Under the pieces are notes generated by a model that was not told the origin of the DNA, searched no databases, and saw nothing but the letters and a program-made list of their open reading frames with translations. The translations under genes and the position numbers were made by a program. A DNA stretch of 32,681 nucleotides from Ginkgo biloba (taxonomy: Eukaryota; Plantae; Ginkgophyta): positions 162,906,048 through 162,938,728 of the forward strand of contig JANKJI020000002.1 of the NCBI GenBank assembly GCA_024626585.2, read 5' to 3'. Numbering within the stretch: the stretch's first letter is position 1; each line of letters starts with the position of its first letter. Of this stretch, positions 1 to 32,238 are shown in pieces.

Positions 1-393
1 CTGCGTTGTATCAGACAACAAAATAAAGCTGAAAACCTTGAAGCATAATGTGCTTTGAGAACGACTAAGTTTTTGCAGACCCCTGACCATACGAGCAATT
101 GATCCAGTGACAAGACACCACAAACTTCAAAGTTTTGCCCCATTTTATTGAATAAATCAATACACATAAAATGCAGCATGCCAAACGTGCTTTGAGAAAA
201 CTTTTGGTCCAATACAGCAGATGATTAAGTTAATAACCAAGAGCAAAATAAATACAAGGATAAAAATGTCCCAGTGACTAAATCCCCCCCCAAAAAAATA
301 TAATTGAGGGAATACAAACCACTAACAGAAGCAAAAATGATATTTGGGGGAACATAAAACGAAAAAGAAGATACAGCAGCAGCAGCAGCATAC
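1..393 (-). other. CDKG intron; probable 3' acceptor exactly at window start
   Basis: Donor GTATG at 393. The minus strand ends TTTATTTTGTTGTCTGATACAACGCAG (branch-like CTGAT, CAG at 3-1), so the next exon (APE...) would begin just outside the window. Confidence 0.75.
374..390 (-). repeat. (TGC)5 microsatellite directly after the intron donor
   Basis: Plus strand reads cagcagcagcagcagca. Confidence 0.85.
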
Positions 394-522
394 CTGTACC
401 ATAAAGTGACCACGGTATTTGTGTAAGCTTTCAGTGGACTGCCATACTGACGAGCTAAACCAAAGTCACATATCTTTAACTCTCCCTTGTTGTTCAGAAG
501 GAGATTTGACGTCTTCAGATCC
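394..522 (-). CDS. CDKG: CDKG internal exon ([44 protein letters not shown])
   Basis: Acceptor GCAG|G at 523/522 and donor TACAG|GTATG at 394/393. 129 bp, phase 2/2; completes HRDLK and contains DFG. Confidence 0.95.
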
Positions 523-737
523 CTGCTTGAGGAAAGTCAGGAGACAGAGCAAGAAAGCACTCTTACTAGTATTACTTGTGGCACAAAATTCATGTTTTTT
601 TATTTTCTTTGTAAAGAAATGGAAAGAGCAATCAATCAGTATATGTGAACCATGTACTTAAATTAAATACTTGTTCCTTTCAAGAGAGAACATGAAAAAC
701 AATGTGTATGTAAATAAGAAACAAGAAAATAACATAC
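523..737 (-). other. CDKG intron (GT-AG, 215 bp)
   Basis: GTATG...GCAG, T-rich on the minus strand; splicing restores the HRDLK motif. Confidence 0.93.
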
Positions 738-2311
738 CTATGCAGTACCCAATTATCATGAAGGTACTTAACACCTTCAAGGAGTTGCAGCATCAGGCAT
801 TTTACTTCACTTTGGCTGAAAGGATGTTTCATAGATTCCAGAAGTGCCTTGAGATCATGTTCCATATACTCCATCACCATAAAAATACTATCCAAGTTGC
901 TGCCTACCACTACTTCCTTTACATCTACAACAGATGGGTGATGGAATGACAACAACACGTTGATCTCCCTCAACGAGGTCATGGGAAAACCCTCCCTCTC
1001 TTTTTCCATTTTTACCTTTTTCAAAGCAACAATCTCCCCTGTCTTCTTATTTCTGGCTCTATAAACAACGCCATAGGTACCTTCATCTATCCTGTTAAGC
1101 CTCTCAAATTCATCAACACTTCTGCAACCTTGCAACATATCAATTAACCGTTGAGGGGGTGATGGTGGGGAAGTTTGAGTTACAGGAGACTGCTCTTCCT
1201 CAGAATCTGATTCAGAAATTTGCTCGGGATAATCATCTTGGGCATCATCTTCCTCATCCAACTCCATAAGCTCTCTTCTATTCAATTCCCTATCATACTC
1301 TTCCTCTCGCCTGATAGTCTGTTCAAGTTCTCTGCCAGAACTTCCTCCACTACTTTCACCTCTGTCATTATCTGGACTTCTTGATCTCCCTTGGCCACCC
1401 TCCAATCTCTCACTAATATGATCTGCAGATTCAGCAGACAAACTCAGGTTGCTTCCCTGATTGCCTCCATTACGAGGAAAGAAACTAGAATCTTTGCTGT
1501 CCATGCTCACTGTATATTTCCTTGCTTTCTGTAAGCTTTCATCTTCAATAGACCTTGCATTTTTTGGTGAACTGTTTACATCTGCCCAGCGGGATGCAGC
1601 AATGTGTCTTGGTGGCAAAGTCTCTTCCTCATCCTTATATTTTAGCCTGTTTGAATGTCGTTCTAATTCTTGTCCACCACCCAGCATTGGAGACTCTAAA
1701 TGTTCTTGCATGTGACCATCTATATACTCTAAATCAGTATTGCTCTCAGCTTCAGGCGGTGGAGATTTAGGGTGCTGTTCTGAAGGCAACAACAGAGAAA
1801 CACGTTCTCCCACTCCAAAGGGCCAGGATGGTCTCTCCCCTGAACTGTTTGGCTGTATCTGACATGTGATAAAAGGATCCGGAGATACATTTCCCAGTTT
1901 TAGAGGGGGTAAAGGAGGTGGTGGTGGAAATTTTTGTGACAGATAAGACTGAGAAGACACCAGTCCTCCTGCATTCTGTCTCGCTGAAAATAATTTTTCT
2001 GGGCTAACCTTAGAACCATTGGCAACACCCAAGGACGATCCTAGGACACTTNNNNNNNNNNNNNNNNNNNNNNNNNNNNNNNNNNNNNNNNNNAGAATAT
2101 TTCCTCTTCTTTGGAATGGAATTGCCAGAGTCAGGTTTCTGCACCTCACCTTCAGACACATTTTGATTGGAAATAGGAATTACAACATAATCAGACATCC
2201 CACTGCCATCCTCAGAAAGACTCCCACTAGAAAGCTCTCCAGGCTCCCTGTCTGCAACCTTCCTAGCATGCATTCTCTCCCTCTCCATTTTGCTGACATC
2301 ACTTTCGCTCA
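738..2311 (-). CDS. CDKG: Cyclin-dependent kinase G (CDKG/CDK11-like), large coding exon: low-complexity N-terminal region plus kinase subdomains I-VIa; 5' end probably in the N gap 2312-2848
   Basis: Translation has DREPGELSS and KKRKYS (N-terminal CDKG-like motifs), then [42 protein letters not shown] and HDNWVLHR. It ends at donor CATAG|GTATG (phase 2) at 738/737. The frame change between ORFs 2010-2867 and 680-2161 falls on the 42-N gap (2052-2093). Confidence 0.93.
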
Positions 2312-2966
2312 NNNNNNNNNNNNNNNNNNNNNNNNNNNNNNNNNNNNNNNNNNNNNNNNNNNNNNNNNNNNNNNNNNNNNNNNNNNNNNNNNNNNNNNNN
2401 NNNNNNNNNNNNNNNNNNNNNNNNNNNNNNNNNNNNNNNNNNNNNNNNNNNNNNNNNNNNNNNNNNNNNNNNNNNNNNNNNNNNNNNNNNNNNNNNNNNN
2501 NNNNNNNNNNNNNNNNNNNNNNNNNNNNNNNNNNNNNNNNNNNNNNNNNNNNNNNNNNNNNNNNNNNNNNNNNNNNNNNNNNNNNNNNNNNNNNNNNNNN
2601 NNNNNNNNNNNNNNNNNNNNNNNNNNNNNNNNNNNNNNNNNNNNNNNNNNNNNNNNNNNNNNNNNNNNNNNNNNNNNNNNNNNNNNNNNNNNNNNNNNNN
2701 NNNNNNNNNNNNNNNNNNNNNNNNNNNNNNNNNNNNNNNNNNNNNNNNNNNNNNNNNNNNNNNNNNNNNNNNNNNNNNNNNNNNNNNNNNNNNNNNNNNN
2801 NNNNNNNNNNNNNNNNNNNNNNNNNNNNNNNNNNNNNNNNNNNNNNNNAACTCAGGGCCGAATTCATAGTACTCGGCTAGCAAGCTACACACTGGACAAT
2901 ACAGCGCTCGCACTGGTCGCATTTTCTCCATCATTCTCCCCAAAGAAAGAAATTTAGAATTCAGCC

Positions 2967-3122
2967 CTGTAAAGGAATTTTATCAAACAGTTGGTGTGCA
3001 CTGTGCAGTTTGGTTTACAATGGTTCTGGTACCAAGGATGAAGGCACTCCCGTGAAATAGCGCTGCCGCATGTTCTTCTCCCTGTTGAGTCTTCAATTGC
3101 AACCAATCTTGATAGGTTTCAC
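2967..3122 (-). other. Predicted 5' UTR intron of CDKG
   Basis: Donor AAG|GTGAAA at 3122 and strong acceptor ATTCCTTTACAG|G at 2967; motif-only prediction. Confidence 0.45.
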
Positions 3123-3187
3123 CTTTGTTCCGCTGGCACTCCAATCGAGTTCAATTTTAGAGTGATTTTCCGTCATCGACAGAATCT

Positions 3188-3452
3188 CTTGTCTAATTGA
3201 GCTATTTCACTCTTTCCATTAAACAGAGGTTCCTTCGCTAAAAGCTCCGCCATGATACATCCCAAGGACCACATATCAATAGCTGTTGAGTACTGCTTCG
3301 CTCCCAACAGAAGCTCTGGTGCTCTGTACCATAAAGTGACTACTGTATTTGTGTAAGCTTTCAATGGACTGCCATACTGACGAGCTAAACCAAAGTCACA
3401 TATCTTTAGTTCTCCCTTGTTATTCAAAAGGAGATTTGACGTCTTCAAATCC
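3188..3452 (-). pseudogene. Processed (spliced) CDKG kinase fragment, subdomains VIb-X (DLKTS...TLWYR|APELLLG...QLDK), upstream of the CDKG coding exon
   Basis: 3324-3452 matches exon 394-522 at 121/129 nt. It continues with no intron into [45 protein letters not shown]. There is an in-frame TAG immediately upstream and a stop four codons after the homology ends. Confidence 0.9.
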
Positions 3453-3602
3453 TAATTTCTGGAAGGTTGAGCCCGTATATTCAGAAATTGGTCCACCACC
3501 ATTGATGCATTCTGCACCAAGTGTCTCGCATGTCACTTGAAGATCGAAAGCCGTCTGGTTTGAAGCGCTCGGCGAGAGGTCCCTGTGAATCTTTAGCCTA
3601 GC

Positions 3603-3887
3603 CTGAGAATGAACAATTCAAAACCAAAACCTGTTTTGCCTACGCCTAAATTTTGCTCTATTTTTATGAATCTAAAATCTTCAGCCGCTGAAAACCTGAG
3701 ACCTTCGCTCCAGCCACAGGAAATCGTCTGTCCGAATCTCTAGAATTTCCAACTATCCCTTAAGTAAATATAACCAAAATAAATATCTTTAACCCTAGCT
3801 TTAGCACAAAATACTTTTCCCATAATTTTGTACAAAAGTATGATTCAACATGAGGAAAAAAATGTCGTGGGATGCTTGGAAGCTTAC
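3603..3887 (-). other. Predicted first 5' UTR intron of CDKG
   Basis: Donor TGG|GTAAGC at 3887, T-rich body on the minus strand, acceptor TTTTGAATTGTTCATTCTCAG|G at 3603; motif-only prediction. Confidence 0.5.
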
Positions 3888-4026
3888 CCAAACAGAACGG
3901 CTTGAATGAGAAGATGATTGCTGGTTCTTTGCGCCACTCCTGCAAGGTTTGGCACTCTCCAATCGTTACGCAGTAGCCGCCAGTTTCCTACCCGACAATG
4001 AAAATGTGACCAGAAATTTCAACGAT

Positions 4027-4408
4027 TCGGGCTTTGGCCAGTATATAGTCAAAGACTCGAATGAGCATGTGGTCACGTGGGACTCAAGGAGAGCGTATTT
4101 AGAATTTCACTTGGTCCATAGTGCTCAATGCTCTAGGGAACTTATAATTATAACATTAGGGATTTTGGGGTCCGGCTGAAATGGGTAGAAAGGATGATTA
4201 CTTATAATAATTAACGACGATTAACTATATTTTCATGACGTCAGTCCAAAGGCTTGCTATATCATGTTGAGGCCGCATTAACCTTTGGCCACAGCTAAGT
4301 TCACCCTTTACGTAGAGAGGAACCTGGATTCCATGTATTTATAGTGATTGATATCAATGGTATATCATTAATCTATGGTTTATCTCTAATTTTTTTTTTT
4401 GGCACGTG
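4027..4408 (-). promoter_or_regulatory. Putative CDKG proximal promoter
   Basis: TATA-like CTATATA (minus strand, 4042-4048), G-box CACGTG at 4074-4079 and 4403-4408, and palindromic TGACGTCA at 4236-4243, upstream of a GC-richer putative first exon (~3888-4010). Confidence 0.4.
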
Positions 4409-6979
4409 AGTTGAATTTTTGTGTTAAAAGAGGGAAGGGATTTNNNNNNNNNNNNNNNNNNNNNNNNNNNNNNNNNNNNNNNNNNNNNNNNNNNNNNNNN
4501 NNNNNNNNNNNNNNTCTTATATTTAATATATAATCTTATAGTATATTGTATACATATTATGAAATTCAATTGAATTGATCATATAATTATAATTTTTTTT
4601 AAATAACATATGTGGATCAATGATGCATGTGGATTTAGACAGAGCATAAATAATATTACATTTATAGATTTTGTTACACAAAATTAGACATCTTTTTAGG
4701 ACTATATTGTAAGAAGTTATGTGGCATGTAATAACATTAGGTGTAATAGGGTTTCCCCTTAAAAATGTTTATATATGTAAACCTTTTAGGTGATGGACTA
4801 ATTAGTAATGTAAGTTACATACAAGGCATTTGATGTCCATTTAGGTTGTCTAATGATGATTATGTTTAATTACCCCTTGAAGGCCATTTTTGTATAGTTT
4901 TTGTGACTTGCCATTACATGGCTCTTATTAATACTCGTCGAAGGTAGATTATTATAGTGACAGATAATGGATGTCTAATTAGTCATCATTCTTCTATCCA
5001 ATCATAGTGATTTATTTTTTAATCTTACTTTTGATTTGGTAGTATCAATATGCTGAATGTATAAATTTTTTAGTCTTTAAAAAAATATAACTTGTGAGAT
5101 TGGTGTGATTTCATTAATATGATTTATTCTTCTTATTATTGTTGAATGAAAATATGTGAATAAATTTATTTGTTTATGATGGCTCATCACATTTAAAGAT
5201 GGCTTATTATATAAATATCTTAAGAGATTTGATAATAAATGCAAGGAAGGTGATGTGATTTCTTTCTTTCTTATTATTATCTAATAGAAATAAATATGTT
5301 TACTTATATTTGTTGCCATATATTATACGCATCATATGTGTGGCCAATAGAGTAAGCTTGTTTACTTATATTATATCACTATGTTATGTTGTGGGGTAGC
5401 CACCTGGTATCAATCACTGAAATACCGAATGATGTAGCATGGATCATTAGTCCACCAAGCTACTCTCCTTATCCACCTCAAACACAGAGAAAAATAATGC
5501 AATAAAGCAAAACGCACAAGAATACGGAGGTTGAGTAAAGAAAGATAATATTGTTTATATGTGTGTGTATGTGTGTACACTAGTCCTTTTCCCGTGTTAA
5601 ATAATTGACATAGGAAAAGGACACCCCAGGGGNNNNNNNNNNNNNNNNNNNNNNNNNNNNNNNNNNNNNNNNNNNNNNNNNNNNNNNNNNNNNNNNNNNN
5701 NNNNNNNNNNNNNNNNNNNNNNNNNNNNNNNNNNNNNNNNNNNNNNNNNNNNNNNNNNNNNNNNNNNNNNNNNNNNNNNNNNNNNNNNNNNNNNNNNNNN
5801 NNNNNNNNNNNNNNNNNNNNNNNNNNNNNNNNNNNNNNNNNNNNNNNNNNNNNNNNNNNNNNNNNNNNNNNNNNNNNNNNNNNNNNNNNNNNNNNNNNNN
5901 NNNNNNNNNNNNNNNNNNNNNNNNNNNNNNNNNNNNNNNNNNNNNNNNNNNNNNNNNNNNNNNNNNNNNNNNNNNNNNNNNNNNNNNNNNNNNNNNNNNN
6001 NNNNNNNNNNNNNNNNNNNNNNNNNNNNNNNNNNNNNNNNNNNNNNNNNNNNNNNNNNNNNNNNNNNNNNNNNNNNNNNNNNNNNNNNNNNNNNNNNNNN
6101 NNNNNNNNNNNNNNNNNNNNNNNNNNNNNNNNNNNNNNNNNNNNNNNNNNNNNNNNNNNNNNNNNNNNNNNNNNNNNNNNNNNNNNNNNNNNNNNNNNNN
6201 NNNNNNNNNNNNNNNNNNNNNNNNNNNNNNNNNNNNNNNNNNNNNNNNNNNNNNNNNNNNNNNNNNNNNNNNNNNNNNNNNNNNNNNNNNNNNNNNNNNN
6301 NNNNNNNNNNNNNNNNNNNNNNNNNNNNNNNNNNNNNNNNNNNNNNNNNNNNNNNNNNNNNNNNNNNNNNNNNNNNAATTAAGCAACAAAGCCTTCTCTA
6401 GTTAAGTTTATTCCCAAAATTTATATTTTTGCATATTTAAAGGTAAAATATATATTTCAACATGGATTATACACTCGTAAAATTTAGAAATATGACATCA
6501 ACAGTAAGAATAGATCCTAAGAGGTTTTGAACTCAAAAATTTCATTTCTTTGAGATATTTACTATCAAATTCCAATTTGCATAACTAAGGGGGAGTCAAG
6601 GAGGCAAACATTCTATTTGTTTAAATGATTAAAAGGCTAACCTGTTTCTTTTCTAACTAAACTCCTATAACCTAATAATTATCCTTCTTCCCTAGATTAT
6701 TTTATAGAAGATAATATGCTTTTAAATGTTACTACCTTTAGTTTCATTCCCATCTCCATCACTATCTATTATTATTTCTATGAAGCATACTCTTAAACAA
6801 ATCTATAAACATTATTAAGCACCAAACTAGTTAACAATGTAGGGTGAATGTTGGACCAATAAAACTTTCCATTTCATCTTCTCTTAACAAACTCCCTAAT
6901 GCCCTCAATGGGATTTTTTCTTCTTCAATTCCATATGCTACACTCATGAGGAATACTATTGATCAATAGAGTTATTAAT

Positions 6980-7431
6980 TGATGCATACGATGGGCGCAG
7001 TGCGACCCTTGATCAACCAAACCACAAATTTAATCATGGAGGGTTAAACAATGCAATAGGAATATAGGAGTATTCACAAACAGTACCAAATACCTATAAA
7101 CTCGAGTTTAGCAAACTAAGATAGGGCACAGAGAAACACAAACATATTTATCTATTCAAATATGAAAGCATTTTCATTAAAAGTTCCCCATTGGGATTAA
7201 TAAAAATATCAAAGTAATACAAACTCCTCAGAGGATAATTTCAAATATGTATAGAATTTCTCTTCAGTCCCTTCCCCTCAGATCTCACATATTAGCACTC
7301 TACCACTCAATTTAGTTTGCGCCTCTTTCTTCTGCTCAATTCACCTCATCTACTCTCCTTCCTCCTTCTCTTCTCTCTCTCTCTCTACCTTCCTTCTTTC
7401 TGCCTTTTGCTCTTGTCTCTTACTCAATACA
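6980..7431 (-). repeat. 3' LTR of element A
   Basis: TG...CA termini. About 80% identical by eye to 13349-13636. A purine-rich PPT-like tract lies on the minus strand at ~7432-7453. Confidence 0.7.
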
Positions 7432-11118: not shown

Positions 11119-13230
11119 AACTCTCTTAGATGAACCCCTTCTCCATCAATTACTGTACTTGTTAGTTTATCTCTTCATTCTTTAGTGGACTCAACTATTT
11201 GCATCTTGGTTCGACATACTAGATTATGGAACCAAGTTGATATGGTGTGTGATGCCTTTGCCTAGAGCTATCCCTGCCAGTAACTCCTCTAGCATGATAT
11301 CATTGAANNNNNNNNNNNNNNNNNNNNNNNNNNNNNNNNNNNNNNNNNNNNNNNNNNNNNNNNNNNNNNNNNNNNNNNNNNNNNNNNNNNNNNNNNNNNN
11401 NNNNNNNNNNNNNNNNNNNNNNNNNNNNNNNNNNNNNNNNNNNNNNNNNNNNNNNNNNNNNNNNNNNNNNNNNNNNNNNNNNNNNNNNNNNNNNNNNNNG
11501 GTGTATGTGTTCTTTATCCTATTGTGTACTATTTGTCGATCATACTGCCACAATCTTCCCAATAATAAATGGCATGCATCCATCAGCATGATGTCACACC
11601 ATACTTCATCTTTAGACTTCTCGATATGAAATACTACTAGGCACCTTTCCTTGATGGTGATCTCGCCTCCTTTCTTAAACCACAAAATTTGATATGGTAC
11701 ATTATGCTTCTATTAGTACAATCCTAATTTTAGACCATCTCTTCCGACACCATATTTTCACAATTACCTCCATTGATGATCACTTCACAGCGTTTTCCTC
11801 CAGATGTGCATTTCATCCTAAAGATTCTCTTCCTCTACTCCAAGTCATTTGTCAATCTCAAGTCTTTGTCGATGACACTCTATTTTCCATTCATTGGTCT
11901 CTTCTCTTCACTTATCGACATCCTCCCTTATTGATTGGTTGGTTTACTTCCCTCATTTACTAACAACCTTTGATCCCTAGTTGAATGGATTTTTTCTTTG
12001 GCCTTTAGTCTTTTGTTGGTTACTGATGTTCTTGCATTTGGTGTCAATAATACTTTGTTTTCCATTAGGTTCTCTAATTTCTCTATCATTGTATGCTCTG
12101 CCATCACTTCATCATGTGCTAAATCTGTCCTTCAATCCTCTTGCCTTGCTTTGTCATCAACTCTTATCAAGCATTCAAATGCTCTATGGCCTTCCTCGCC
12201 ACATTTAAAATAAATTTTTGATCTCCTTGGTGCATAAAATACCTTGACAAATCCTCTTCCTCATGGAAAAAAAACTCATCCTAATCTCTCATTCATCGAG
12301 TGGTGACTTCTCTCCTTGGCCTCGATGATATGTCTTGTTGGTTCTCAACTACTCTATCACTCTTGGAACTACTCTCTCCACTCCACATTATGGAACCATC
12401 TCTCCACCTTTTAATTGGGGACTCTTCTCATCTTGCGATTAGTCTCTTCCTCATGTTCTTGGTTAATTTCTCCTCTACCTTTAGTGTTAATTGATATTCT
12501 TCTTCCATTGACTTCATCTAATTCATGGTGATCTCATCATGAATAAGATTAATCCATTCATCTACCTCATTATTAGTTTCTCTTCTCCTTTATTGAGTTT
12601 GTTTTGGATGGATAGTTTATAAAACTTGTCAGTGTACCCTTGTGCATTTCTACCTCTTTGTCTTAAGTTCTATAATTACCAAAACAACCTTTGCCCATAA
12701 TCTGTTGGTGAGAATTTCCCTTTGAATTTTTCCACCATTTTATTCCATGTTCTATTTTTCTCCTTACTCCTTCTTATCCTCTCCTTTTGTAGATGTTCCC
12801 ACCACAGATCTATGNNNNNNNNNNNNNNNNNNNNNNNNNNNNNNNNNNNNNNNNNNNNNNNNNNNNNTCTTCCCATTCAAAATACTTCTCTAGGGTACCT
12901 ATCTAATCCAAGAAATCTTCTAGTTTTAAACTTCCCTCGAAACTCAGGACTTCCATCTTAGATCCACCTCTATGGTTCTTCAATAATACTACTAACAATG
13001 CAACCAAGTCTTTTAGCCTTGGTTCTACTTGCTCTTATACCTCTACCTCAGGCTCTAATTCACCTCCCCTTTTTGGCACTTGTCTTCGTNNNNNNNNNNN
13101 NNNNNNNNNNNNNNNNNNNNNNNNNNNNTCAATACGTCTTCTCAAAGCTTTGATTTCTTTATCGACTATGGATCCTCCTCTTCTACCTCCATTTTCTACT
13201 CTTAGTGGCATCTTCTTGCCCACTCATAGT
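11119..13230 (-). pseudogene. gag-protease-RT(N-term) remnant of element A
   Basis: ORF fragments 13035-13223, 12676-12876 and 11224-11685 resemble Ty3/gypsy gag, aspartic protease and the RT start (HHINLVP). Confidence 0.85.
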
Positions 13231-13348
13231 AAACCTAACTTTAGGATTTTTCTCCTCATAATTTTCCTCATTATGACATCCACACTCTTCCACACCCTTC
13301 CATGGTGTACTTCTTAAACAAGCCTTCAACCTCAACTTTGATACCGAC

Positions 13349-13636
13349 TGAAGCATATGGGTGAGCATGCTGCATCCCTTGACCAACCAACCCACATGAT
13401 TTAATCAGATAGGGTTAAATAATACAATAGGAATAGGGGAGTATTCACACATAATACCAGACACCTCTAAACCTCAGCTTTACAAACTAAGATAGGGTGC
13501 ATAGCAACATAAACACATTTATCTATTCGAATATAAAATCATTTTCATTAAAGGTTCCCCAAAGATTAATAAATACATCAAAGTGATACAACCTCCTTAG
13601 AGGAAAATTTTAAATATGCACATAATTTCTCTTCAG
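13349..13636 (-). repeat. 5' LTR of element A (truncated by N gap)
   Basis: Homologous to 6980-7267, with an adjacent Met-tRNA-type PBS remnant at ~13334-13346. Confidence 0.78.
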
Positions 13637-13736
13637 NNNNNNNNNNNNNNNNNNNNNNNNNNNNNNNNNNNNNNNNNNNNNNNNNNNNNNNNNNNNNNNN
13701 NNNNNNNNNNNNNNNNNNNNNNNNNNNNNNNNNNNN

Positions 13737-16113
13737 GTGAGGCATGATTGAGGGGTGACATTAGACTCACCCAGGTAGTTTACAGCTATGGAGGTAAAGG
13801 TATTGAGGTAGATTCACCATGGTGATCAAGTATTAGAGACCCCGAACAGACCGTCGAGTGAGGCAGTTCACGAATGTATGCGTAGTGGTTGTCATGTGTA
13901 AATCCCACCTAAAGTGTGGATGTAATACCTATGTGGTCGTGTTGTAAGTCATGAGNNNNNNNNNNNNNNNNNNNNNNNNNNNNNNNNNNNNNNNNNNNNN
14001 NNNNNNNNNNNNNNNNNNNNNNNNNNNNNNNNNNNNNNNNNNNNNNNNNNNNNNNNNNNNTACCTAGAGTTTTATTCCCCACGAGGGTTTCTCCAATTAA
14101 AACATCGTGTGCCCTAAATCTGTGATTTTATTTTTGTTTGATTCATATATATCTTTTTTATTTGTGGTCAATCGTTTAAGTGAGTGGCCCAGAAGGGAGT
14201 TATGCGATATAATATACTTCCTATGGCTTGGACGAGTGAAGCCCTAGTGTAATCCAAAGTGAGCTACGATGAGAGTTCCCTATATGTTGCCAAGAGATCC
14301 TGGAAGGTAGGGTGTATCTTTGAGGCTGGGGAGTCTCCTGGTGTTGGTGTTGACCAACACAACTCTGACCCCCCCACTACTGTCAATGGTATTAGAGCCC
14401 AGTTACAAAGTATTGTAACAAGTTTTTAGAGTACATCAGTAACATTTAATATCTCAATAGCACCTCAGGTGGACAAGACATTGGTGAACTTTTTGGAAAG
14501 TTTGGTGTAGAAGGTGAATGGCCTAGAAGAAGCCTTGAGGAGTCAGTGAACAATATTGGAGGCTAAAAAGGTGGTTGAGCCAAGGGCCAATGAATAAGAA
14601 GCTGGACCCTTTAGACAGAGTGTGGAAGAAGTGGTCATTTAGACATTAGGTAGTTTAAGGGGAAAAGCTAAAGTAGAAGCACCTTACTTTGGAGGCAGTT
14701 TAGATTTGGAAGATCTATTGGATTGGATTGGTGACATGGAGAAGTATTTTGAGTGGGAAGAAATTGAAAATCCTTGTCGGGTGAGATTTGCTTGCACACA
14801 ATTGAAAGGGCATGCTGCTAGATGGTGGGAGCACTTGTAGAAGGATTGAGTATAGAAGAAGAAAGAGAAGGTGGTGACTTGGTAAAAGATGGTTAGCAGA
14901 TTGAAAGGAAAGTTTCTACCGTCAAACTATGGTCAGTGTTTGTTTAGAGAATTTTAGAACTTGAAGAAGAAAGAGAAGATAGTGATGGAGTATATAGATG
15001 ACTTTTTTAAACTATCAATCTAGAGTGGTTAAGAGGAAGACAAACAATAGTCGGTAGCTAGGTATGTCAATGGTTTAAACTATACCATCCAAGATGAATT
15101 AGTGATGCAACATGTGGAGAGTGTAGACCAGGCATATCAGTTAGCTTTAAGAGTGGAAGATAAGCTAGCTTAGTAGTCAAGGGAAAGACCTCATGTCAGA
15201 AGTAGTCATGCCTGGAGATGGAAGCAGTGAAGGGGCATCAGACTTTGGCAAGTTGAGAAATAGAGTGTGGCGACAGAGCTGCATAGACAGTATGTAGAAA
15301 GTTACCATCTGACCCGTGGAGGAGGAAGTCATTATTCAGTCAGAGGCTGAGGTCAGTTTCCACGTAATTATCAAGAAAGCACCGACGGAGTACAATACAC
15401 CTTTAAGCATCCAGTGAAGTGTTATAGCTATGGCGAGGATGGAAATATATCTTTTGATTATCTTATGAAGAGGAATGGTGAGGTAGGGCTGGAAGCTTGA
15501 CGCACATAGTTAGCTAGGCCAGAATCAGACCTAGTGACATCAGTCATTGACAAGGCCAAAATAGTGCCAAAGAAAGTTGTGTTGTTGTCATTCGATAAGA
15601 AGGGAGAATCTAATGAACGTCGACAGAGGAAGGGAAAGTGGAAAGTGAAGTCAATGGATAACCATCATCCTTCGACAAGAAAAGGAGACAACAGTCAGTA
15701 TAATTTACACACAAAAATTGACGATGGCCAGCAGAAGAAAATTTTTATAGCTAAGTGCTTATCAAGGAAGGAAAGCATCAGTGTGATCGTGGATGGAGGC
15801 ATCTGTGAGAACATGGTGTCGGATGAATTGTTCATGAAGGCAGGGTTGCAAAAGTATCAGTTGAAGACACCTTACAGTATTTCCTAGTTTAAGAAAGGGG
15901 GAGAGATCACAGTCAGAAATAGATGTTTGGTACCTATTTAGCTGAGTGGCTATAAAGATGAAATATGGTATGATGTTGTTCCTATGGATGCATGTCATAT
16001 TCTGTTAGGAAGGTCATGGCAGTTTGACCGACAAGCTATTCACGATGGCAGATAGAACACGTACACTATTGTGAAAGGTGGATGATGACATATTTTCTGG
16101 CCGATGGACATGG
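13737..16113 (+). mobile_element. Degenerate Ty3/gypsy element B (CRM-like): LTR end, PBS, gag and protease; rest lost in gap
   Basis: LTR ends TGTCA at 14385 and PBS TGGTATTAGAGCC follows at 14387-14399. gag reads LLDWIGDMEKYFEW and LKGHAARWWEHL, with a decayed Zn knuckle near 15418. Protease reads VIVDGGICENMVS and PMDACHILLGRSWQFDR. Confidence 0.88.
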
Positions 16114-20356: not shown

Positions 20357-20869
20357 AACGTAAAACTGTGTGAATTACTNNNNNNNNNNNNNNNNNNNNN
20401 NNNNNNNNNNNNNNNNNNNNNNNNNNNNNNNNNNNNNNNNNNNNNNNNNNNNNNNNNNNNNNNNNNNNNNAGTTAGAAGTCGCCCTAAGTGTAATAGGAT
20501 TAGATGTGAATGTCTAGTTAGAGCAAGTAGAAGACAAATTGTTAATAGAAGAATTGTGGTAATCTGCTATTGTGTTGACTGCAATCTCATATTGTCGTAG
20601 GAAGCCTGTAAGTTTCTTCAATTAAGTATGAGAAATTAAAGATTTAGGAATTCAGTAGAATTTCAAGAAAACGCTGTGAGGACAACAAAATTCAAAAAGT
20701 GTTGAAGGATTTCTTANNNNNNNNNNNNNNNNNNNNNNNNNNNNNNNNNNNNNNNNNNNNNNNNNNNNNNNNNNNNNNNNNNNNNNNNNNNNNNNNNNNN
20801 NNNNNNNNNNNNNNNNTAAATTAATATGAAAGTATAAATATTATAGATACTTAACTACACCAAACCTAT

Positions 20870-21152
20870 ATTTAACTATGGTTAGTATAATACATAATCA
20901 TAATTAGGTCAATATTTAACCATGGTTAGATAAACACTTGACCATGGTTGGATCCATCTAATTAAACCTATGCATTGCTATGGTTAGTTCAATACTTAAC
21001 TATGGTTAGGATAGCACTTAAACATGGTTACGTTAGCAATAAATAGTATTCATTTGACTATTTATCTAAACCTTTTATAAAAATACGAAAAGCATCTAAT
21101 TGATCATATCTTTATATAGTTATGTTTGTTGAATTCTTGACTATGGTTAATT
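20870..21152. repeat. Degenerate short repeat array with palindromic core (T)AACCATGGTTA
   Basis: About 7 copies of (A)AC(C/T)ATGGTT(A/G), mostly at ~22 or ~42 bp spacing. Confidence 0.7.
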
Positions 21153-31600: not shown

Positions 31601-32170
31601 CTTAATTGAGCCACCACACGGCATCTACATTGAACCCACTTAAAAAGAGTAAAAAATAAAAGATGCAATAGATCGAACCCTTTCCTCTCCTTTTCAGTGC
31701 TTATATACTTCATTCAAATTACCTAGAAGGCAACGCTTCCCTCCAACAACTTAGTTGGTGAGAATTCATTACAACTCCAATAATTATGCTAATAAGATGC
31801 TCTTAACTGATACCTCCCACTAAGGCATAGCCTTCTCCTTCTCTGGTATAGCCTAATGGTAGGGTTAGTTAAAGTTTCACTATACACCCACCTACAATGA
31901 CTATGCTTAGTATCTTTTCCTTTGACTCCTACATGTAGTTTTTTACCTAACTCTCTCGCTTAAACTTCTAGTTGTTGATCTTTAATGGAAACTTCATTAA
32001 GTCTTTACCCATCACCTTCTCTTCTTTCCTCAATGAGTTAATTTATCTATCATTGGTTCTCCATGACTTATTATTTTCCACCTTATCCTCCTTGTCTTGC
32101 ATCTCGTACTTTCCCTATTTATGGTCTTCCACCACTTATTGGTCATATTCCTCTCATGGCCCTTCCTAAT

Positions 32171-32238
32171 ATTATCACCTAACATTGTCACCTAACATTA
32201 TCTTCTGACATTGTCACCTTACCTTGTCACCTAACATC
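32171..32238. repeat. ~13-bp degenerate tandem repeat (ATTGTCACCTAAC)x~5
   Basis: attatcacctaac attgtcacctaac attatcttctgac attgtcaccttac cttgtcacctaac. Confidence 0.75.

Follow-up and report, generated by a model that had tools for sequence, protein, structure and literature searches.

Does a spliced, intron-free piece of a kinase gene that stands beside a gene of its own family record DNA made from RNA at that place, or was it brought there by the assembly? The question is raised by a stretch of 32,681 nucleotides of the Ginkgo biloba draft genome (called here the window), an AT-rich plant DNA that holds 25 runs of N and debris of retrotransposons. An earlier note, made from the letters alone, had described positions 3188-3452 as an RNA-derived fragment lying next to a gene of its own family, and had proposed that it came from an exon circle, an exon-scrambled transcript or cDNA-templated repair.

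The gene concerned is a CDKG (CDK11-like) kinase gene on the minus strand, which leaves the window at its left end (Table 1). Plant CDKG genes are known splicing regulators. The exons were searched separately, one at a time, and the top protein match of exon 1 was G. biloba Gb_36477, with 70% identity; a full-length protein for the window's own CDKG gene or for the donor of the copy was not found in the protein searches. A gap of 42 N at 2052-2093 breaks the frame of exon 1, but the gene is probably intact across it, because reads and contigs hold five more letters there. The gene needs about 100 further N-terminal codons, within the interval made up of the larger gap and the filled letters that follow it. 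The leader intron at 3740-3887 is spliced in RNA, with weak support, and is also retained (contig over 3711-3917). Elsewhere in the window, direct repeats at 7028-7267 and 13399-13636 (82-86% identical, 6.4 kb apart) are possible LTRs, gypsy-like protease and reverse transcriptase remnants in opposite orientations occupy 11224-16066, and degenerate tandem repeats lie at 20862-21052 (unit of ∼22 nt) and 32153-32237 (unit of ∼13 nt).

Table 1. Coordinates of the CDKG gene, the two-exon copy and its neighbouring pieces in the window
Feature	Positions	Strand	Remarks
CDKG exon 2, flanked by introns	394-522	-	Probably sequence of the paralogue Gb_36477
CDKG first coding exon	737-2311	-	Start hidden in gap; 931-2311 from a single gene
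Assembly gap	2312-2848		537 N; 1140 nt together with the filled letters (2312-3451)
Decayed DENR (TMA22) gene start	2852-2938	-	PF21023, E=9.8e-5, below the curated cut-off; multi-copy in DNA
High-copy genomic repeat	2939-3081		DNA depth up to ∼410, against ∼9 for single copy
Piece Y, fragment of another expressed sequence	3082-3189	-	Matches an X15 contig of depth 86, both ends of which are loose
Copy of CDKG kinase exon 3 (APELL...QLDK)	3188-3323	-	136 nt; intronless join to the exon 2 copy
Copy of CDKG kinase exon 2 (DLKTSN...TLWYR)	3324-3452	-	129 nt; begins at the exon's first base
CDKG 5' leader, genuine and expressed	3453-4020	-	Upstream end approximate; intron at ∼3740-3887

A spliced copy of two kinase exons

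The sequence features reported for the copy itself were reproduced. Its exon 2 part repeats exon 394-522 at an offset of 2930, with 121 of 129 positions identical. The junction TACAG|AGCA then leads straight into the 136 nt encoding RAPELL...QLDK, for which the Pkinase match (E=7.5e-30) is far beyond chance; the intron is missing here, whereas the paralogue's genomic contig aligns as one block over 3188-3326 only, with introns of 204 and 366 nt upstream, the 366-nt intron standing directly before this block. The suggestion that QLDK also marks an exon end is borne out by fern and lycophyte gene models, which run into an intron straight after QLDK, by the paralogue contig, and by mRNA reads, which go on into IFRTLGTPNEK where the window does not. 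Both ends of the copy are exon ends, and therefore the copy consists of exactly two exons. No poly(A) follows its 3' end in the window sequence, as the earlier note had stated, and the copy halts at the end of exon 3. At the other side, the 5' seam passes from the leader into exon 2 as A|G. An RNA-derived copy with exon-exact ends is supported by these data.

At the protein level, all 88 residues of the copy are identical to Gb_36477 (46 of 46 in the exon 3 part), and its exon boundaries are those of the plant CDKG (CDK11/PITSLRE-like) family. Unlike full CDKG kinases, it is a fragment only, without a start codon and a C-terminal lobe, and a stop directly precedes its frame. The eight differences between the copy and the adjacent exon 394-522 are all synonymous. 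Two candidate features of the flanks were rejected. The match AGAAATT/AGAGATT is not a target-site duplication, its 3' side being piece Y of another sequence, and an apparent run-on from the copy into exon 4 (AGATT versus ATATT) is likewise accounted for by piece Y.

The interval between exon 1 and the leader

The letters between the assembly gap and the leader (2849-3451) form a four-part mosaic, in which the kinase exons are accompanied by piece Y, a repeat of high copy number and the decayed start of a DENR gene. Piece Y has at least five differences from its expressed source, which runs on upstream as AT-rich, acceptor-like sequence; the AG at 3188-3189 is common to Y and the kinase copy, and a Pfam search of Y gave no match. 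The DENR piece is ∼10% diverged from its expressed source, eight of the nine listed differences are nonsynonymous, and the loose end of a read contig goes on as the DENR-like FEKCKPWLI. DNA depth is 80-410 across 2852-3120, against ∼9 for single copy. A Rfam search of 2849-5632 gave no match, and the leaders of four conifer mRNAs gave none to 2849-3187 or 3453-4443. The Ginkgo gene model Gb_26613, in which an N-terminal CDKG fragment is joined to ankyrin-like and other pieces, is likely to be another CDKG fragment in mosaic cargo.

Reads and contigs were aligned to positions 1-4443 from a polyA RNA run, a second RNA run (15 reads), an RNA-like contig set and X2, a genome-sized contig set of another individual, of which 41% was read. 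In X2, contig 9 (2178 nt) shows 0 differences over 1318-2311 and rejoins the window at 3452, with no alignment to 2849-3451. If the 39 matching letters end this contig, its leftover (2178-999-39=1140) equals the 537 N plus the 603 filled letters of the window, a comparison made by length alone. The independent genome therefore has an uninterrupted CDKG allele, of equal length, across this interval. In RNA, 3453-4020 and exon 1 are covered and no read lies over 2972-3071; at each listed site within 2867-2931 and 3102-3178 all RNA reads carry another letter, and in a paralogue's transcript 2306 is joined to 3905 with the copy absent. Contig 9 and the RNA pattern thus show that the fill is missing here in the independent genome and in the transcripts seen. 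A second X2 contig of single-copy depth, contig 11, covers 3097-3242 across the QLDK-to-Y junction with 11 differences, and therefore such cargo is present elsewhere in the genome, in more than one version.

The copy and the mosaic around it seem to have been assembled into the CDKG gap by mistake. The RNA origin put forward in the earlier note is supported; insertion beside the gene is not, and misassembly, which the note itself had named as what would overturn its reading, is largely what contig 9 and the RNA gap over the fill indicate. As part of an apparently misplaced patchwork, the copy is therefore not evidence for DNA made from circular RNA.

We consider it probable (about 0.62) that a multi-gene retro-cargo similar to maize Bs1 was drawn into the CDKG gap during assembly. 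A multi-copy element elsewhere would carry pieces of host RNA, namely spliced CDKG exons 2-3, Y, the repeat and the DENR start. A retroelement that copies host transcripts, or splices them, may give rise to such cargo, as in Bs1, and splicing of a chimeric transcript would give exon-exact ends. The CDKG gene in the short-read draft would have had a gap of ∼1.1 kb over the true end of the leader and the N-terminus, and gap filling may then have drawn reads by similarity to the kinase exons and written 603 nt of cargo into it. The published Ginkgo draft was built with SOAPdenovo2, KGF and GapCloser (PMC5118899), and exon capture by transposable elements is common in gymnosperms (PMC13477047). 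At this position the fragment would be without function.

Paralogue classes and the intact kinase frame

A second seam, near position 900, points to a possible chimera of paralogues at this locus and lends support to a misfill. CDKG classes were told apart, by inference, from contig depth in the RNA-like set. The class of depth 56-78 equals the window over 1013-2256; the class of depth 136-177 is diverged there, and so is Gb_36477. To the left of ∼900 the opposite holds: across intron 1 it is the deep class that equals the window, and the class of depth 73 departs from it at five listed sites and has an exon 2 that fits the copy better. At position 3265, the copy agrees with the class of depth 65 but not with the deep class. 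Reads that carry the variants at 931 and 941 show just one further difference. In translation, the window equals Gb_36477 over 746-930 (the sole counted mismatch is the codon at 931) and is only 57-64% identical to it over 1151-2050, and for 26 codons the translated start of intron 2 is identical to the Gb_36477 read-through. This suggests that the window from 1 to ∼900 is Gb_36477 sequence, and that the copy is more like the other gene, the one that has its 5' part here. The probable paralogue seam falls between ∼887 and 931, with Gb_36477 to the left and another CDKG gene to the right; it could be an assembly chimera or the product of gene conversion, and real conversion could give the same seam. 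The Gb_36477 model terminates at QLDK, includes a read-through of intron 2 and carries DRDDF where EREGF is conserved. It is either a truncated model or a diverging paralogue, though the matching transcript class is abundant.

The copy and exon 394-522 would then come from different genes, so that their comparison would be one of two working paralogues, for which synonymous-only differences are expected. If the copy were instead a neutral copy of the adjacent exon, differences confined to synonymous sites would have P∼0.02-0.04, and the chance that a neutral 264-nt piece keeps all its residues is 0.02 at 2% divergence and ∼0.005 at 3%. The kinase piece is intact while the Y and DENR pieces have decayed by 5-10%. 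The capture may have been recent, or the piece may owe its state to conversion, to selection or to a consensus called from reads of the true exons; the first and the last would fit misfilled cargo, in which the kinase letters may be like the working CDKG gene through recent capture or a consensus set by reads of the real exons. Nevertheless, an intact kinase frame beside decayed cargo weighs against misfilled cargo, and so does the exon-exact 5' seam, which blind gap filling does not predict; the cargo must already have had that end. It is conceivable, but very unlikely, that in some haplotypes the spliced CDKG exon 2-3 cDNA and its scraps truly lie in the CDKG leader, with the residues kept by selection or by conversion from the parental gene.

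Other origins and comparison with known systems

The cargo could also be a real insertion into the CDKG leader of the sequenced haplotype, X2 then carrying the empty allele. The cargo family is multi-copy; of the words of 2849-4443, run X1 contains a share of 0.90, and in seven further runs the share exceeds 0.61, the maximum that 3452-4443 alone would give. However, the surplus words can stem from the real CDKG exons and the repeat family, and a true insertion should add length, yet gap plus fill equals the length of the empty allele. Moreover, position 3452 shows neither a target-site duplication nor an element end, the fill is skipped by the RNA of two samples, and a chance landing 3 kb from the gene of its own cargo is improbable. 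We regard a polymorphic insertion as unlikely.

Somewhat less credence is given to cDNA contamination of the DNA libraries, or to a retrocopy of an exon-1-skipping CDKG transcript (the leader spliced to exon 2), misleading the gap filler by its homology to the leader. Such a source would account for the pristine frame, for the leader seam into exon 2, and for the agreement of the copy with the expressed CDKG class of depth ∼65-73 at informative sites. However, a splice from leader to exon 2 is inseparable from the window sequence itself, and the exon 3-to-Y junction occurs in a DNA contig of single-copy depth from another individual, so that a genomic mosaic does exist.

The sources that the earlier note had favoured, cDNA of a circle of exons 2 and 3, an exon-scrambled transcript or cDNA-templated repair, with insertion beside its own gene, fare much worse and appear highly improbable. 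What defines circRNA-derived pseudogenes is an exon junction in reversed order, and low-confidence cases without a back-splice junction have also been described (PMC4897178). The copy resembles them in having internal exons only, exon-exact ends, a lost intron and no poly(A). Unlike them, it has exon 2 and then exon 3 in normal, colinear order, and its flanks are fragments of other genes in a four-part mosaic for which an uninterrupted allele exists. No exon 3-to-exon 2 joint (3188 to 3452 or 3188 to 522) is listed in the polyA run or in the second run with its 15 reads. A backward joint from 3451 to 737 (14 reads, two contigs) was rejected as a back-splice, being the ordinary exon 1-exon 2 splice aligned onto the copy.

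Equally hard to credit is a conserved upstream ORF or autoregulatory module in the CDKG leader exon, which would keep changes synonymous as observed and would suit a position between leader and coding sequence in the window, since the frame has no ATG and is preceded by a stop, no RNA read crosses 2972-3071, synonymous-only differences are expected of two working paralogues, and the piece is missing from the leaders of the paralogue mRNA and of four conifer mRNAs; a conserved peptide uORF was rejected on the same points of start codon, presence in the mRNA leader and conservation in the leaders of relatives.

Misfilled retro-cargo, the reading that we prefer, has its closest counterpart in maize Bs1, an element that has acquired parts of three host genes (PMC13317346). 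As in Bs1-type transduced cargo, unrelated host gene fragments stand in a row, none with a full ORF, in a multi-copy family, and at least one of them, the CDKG piece, is spliced and intron-free. Unlike Bs1, no LTR, primer site or reverse transcriptase is tied to the cargo, of which 603 nt are visible; in the window, no flanking repeat pair was found and one primer-site pattern gave no match, the cargo's true locus probably lying elsewhere. The ATPase piece of Bs1 reportedly shows biased mutation. The loss of the intron is shared with L1-type processed pseudogenes, but the copy differs from these in having no mRNA 3' end, poly(A) or target-site duplication and in running into Y. It also differs from Helitron or Pack-type DNA capture, as the intron is gone and no terminus lies at 3452; later retroposition of a chimera of that type is possible. 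Finally, gymnosperm transposable elements hold captured exon fragments, and a minority of elements carry two or more (PMC13477047). The copy is like these captures and processed pseudogenes in being exon pieces within the repeats of a giant genome, and unlike them in lying in a gap within a member of its own gene family, where the assembly most likely put it.

A warning for users of the draft is that gaps within its genes seem to have been filled with retro-cargo and paralogue sequence, so that other spliced copies next to their own gene in this assembly need independent reads or a long-read assembly. If the linkage were true, it would point to a homology-guided cDNA insertion in a plant, and be notable as such. 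Most likely, however, the locus adds one more retro-captured mosaic of gene fragments in a gymnosperm, of a known type.
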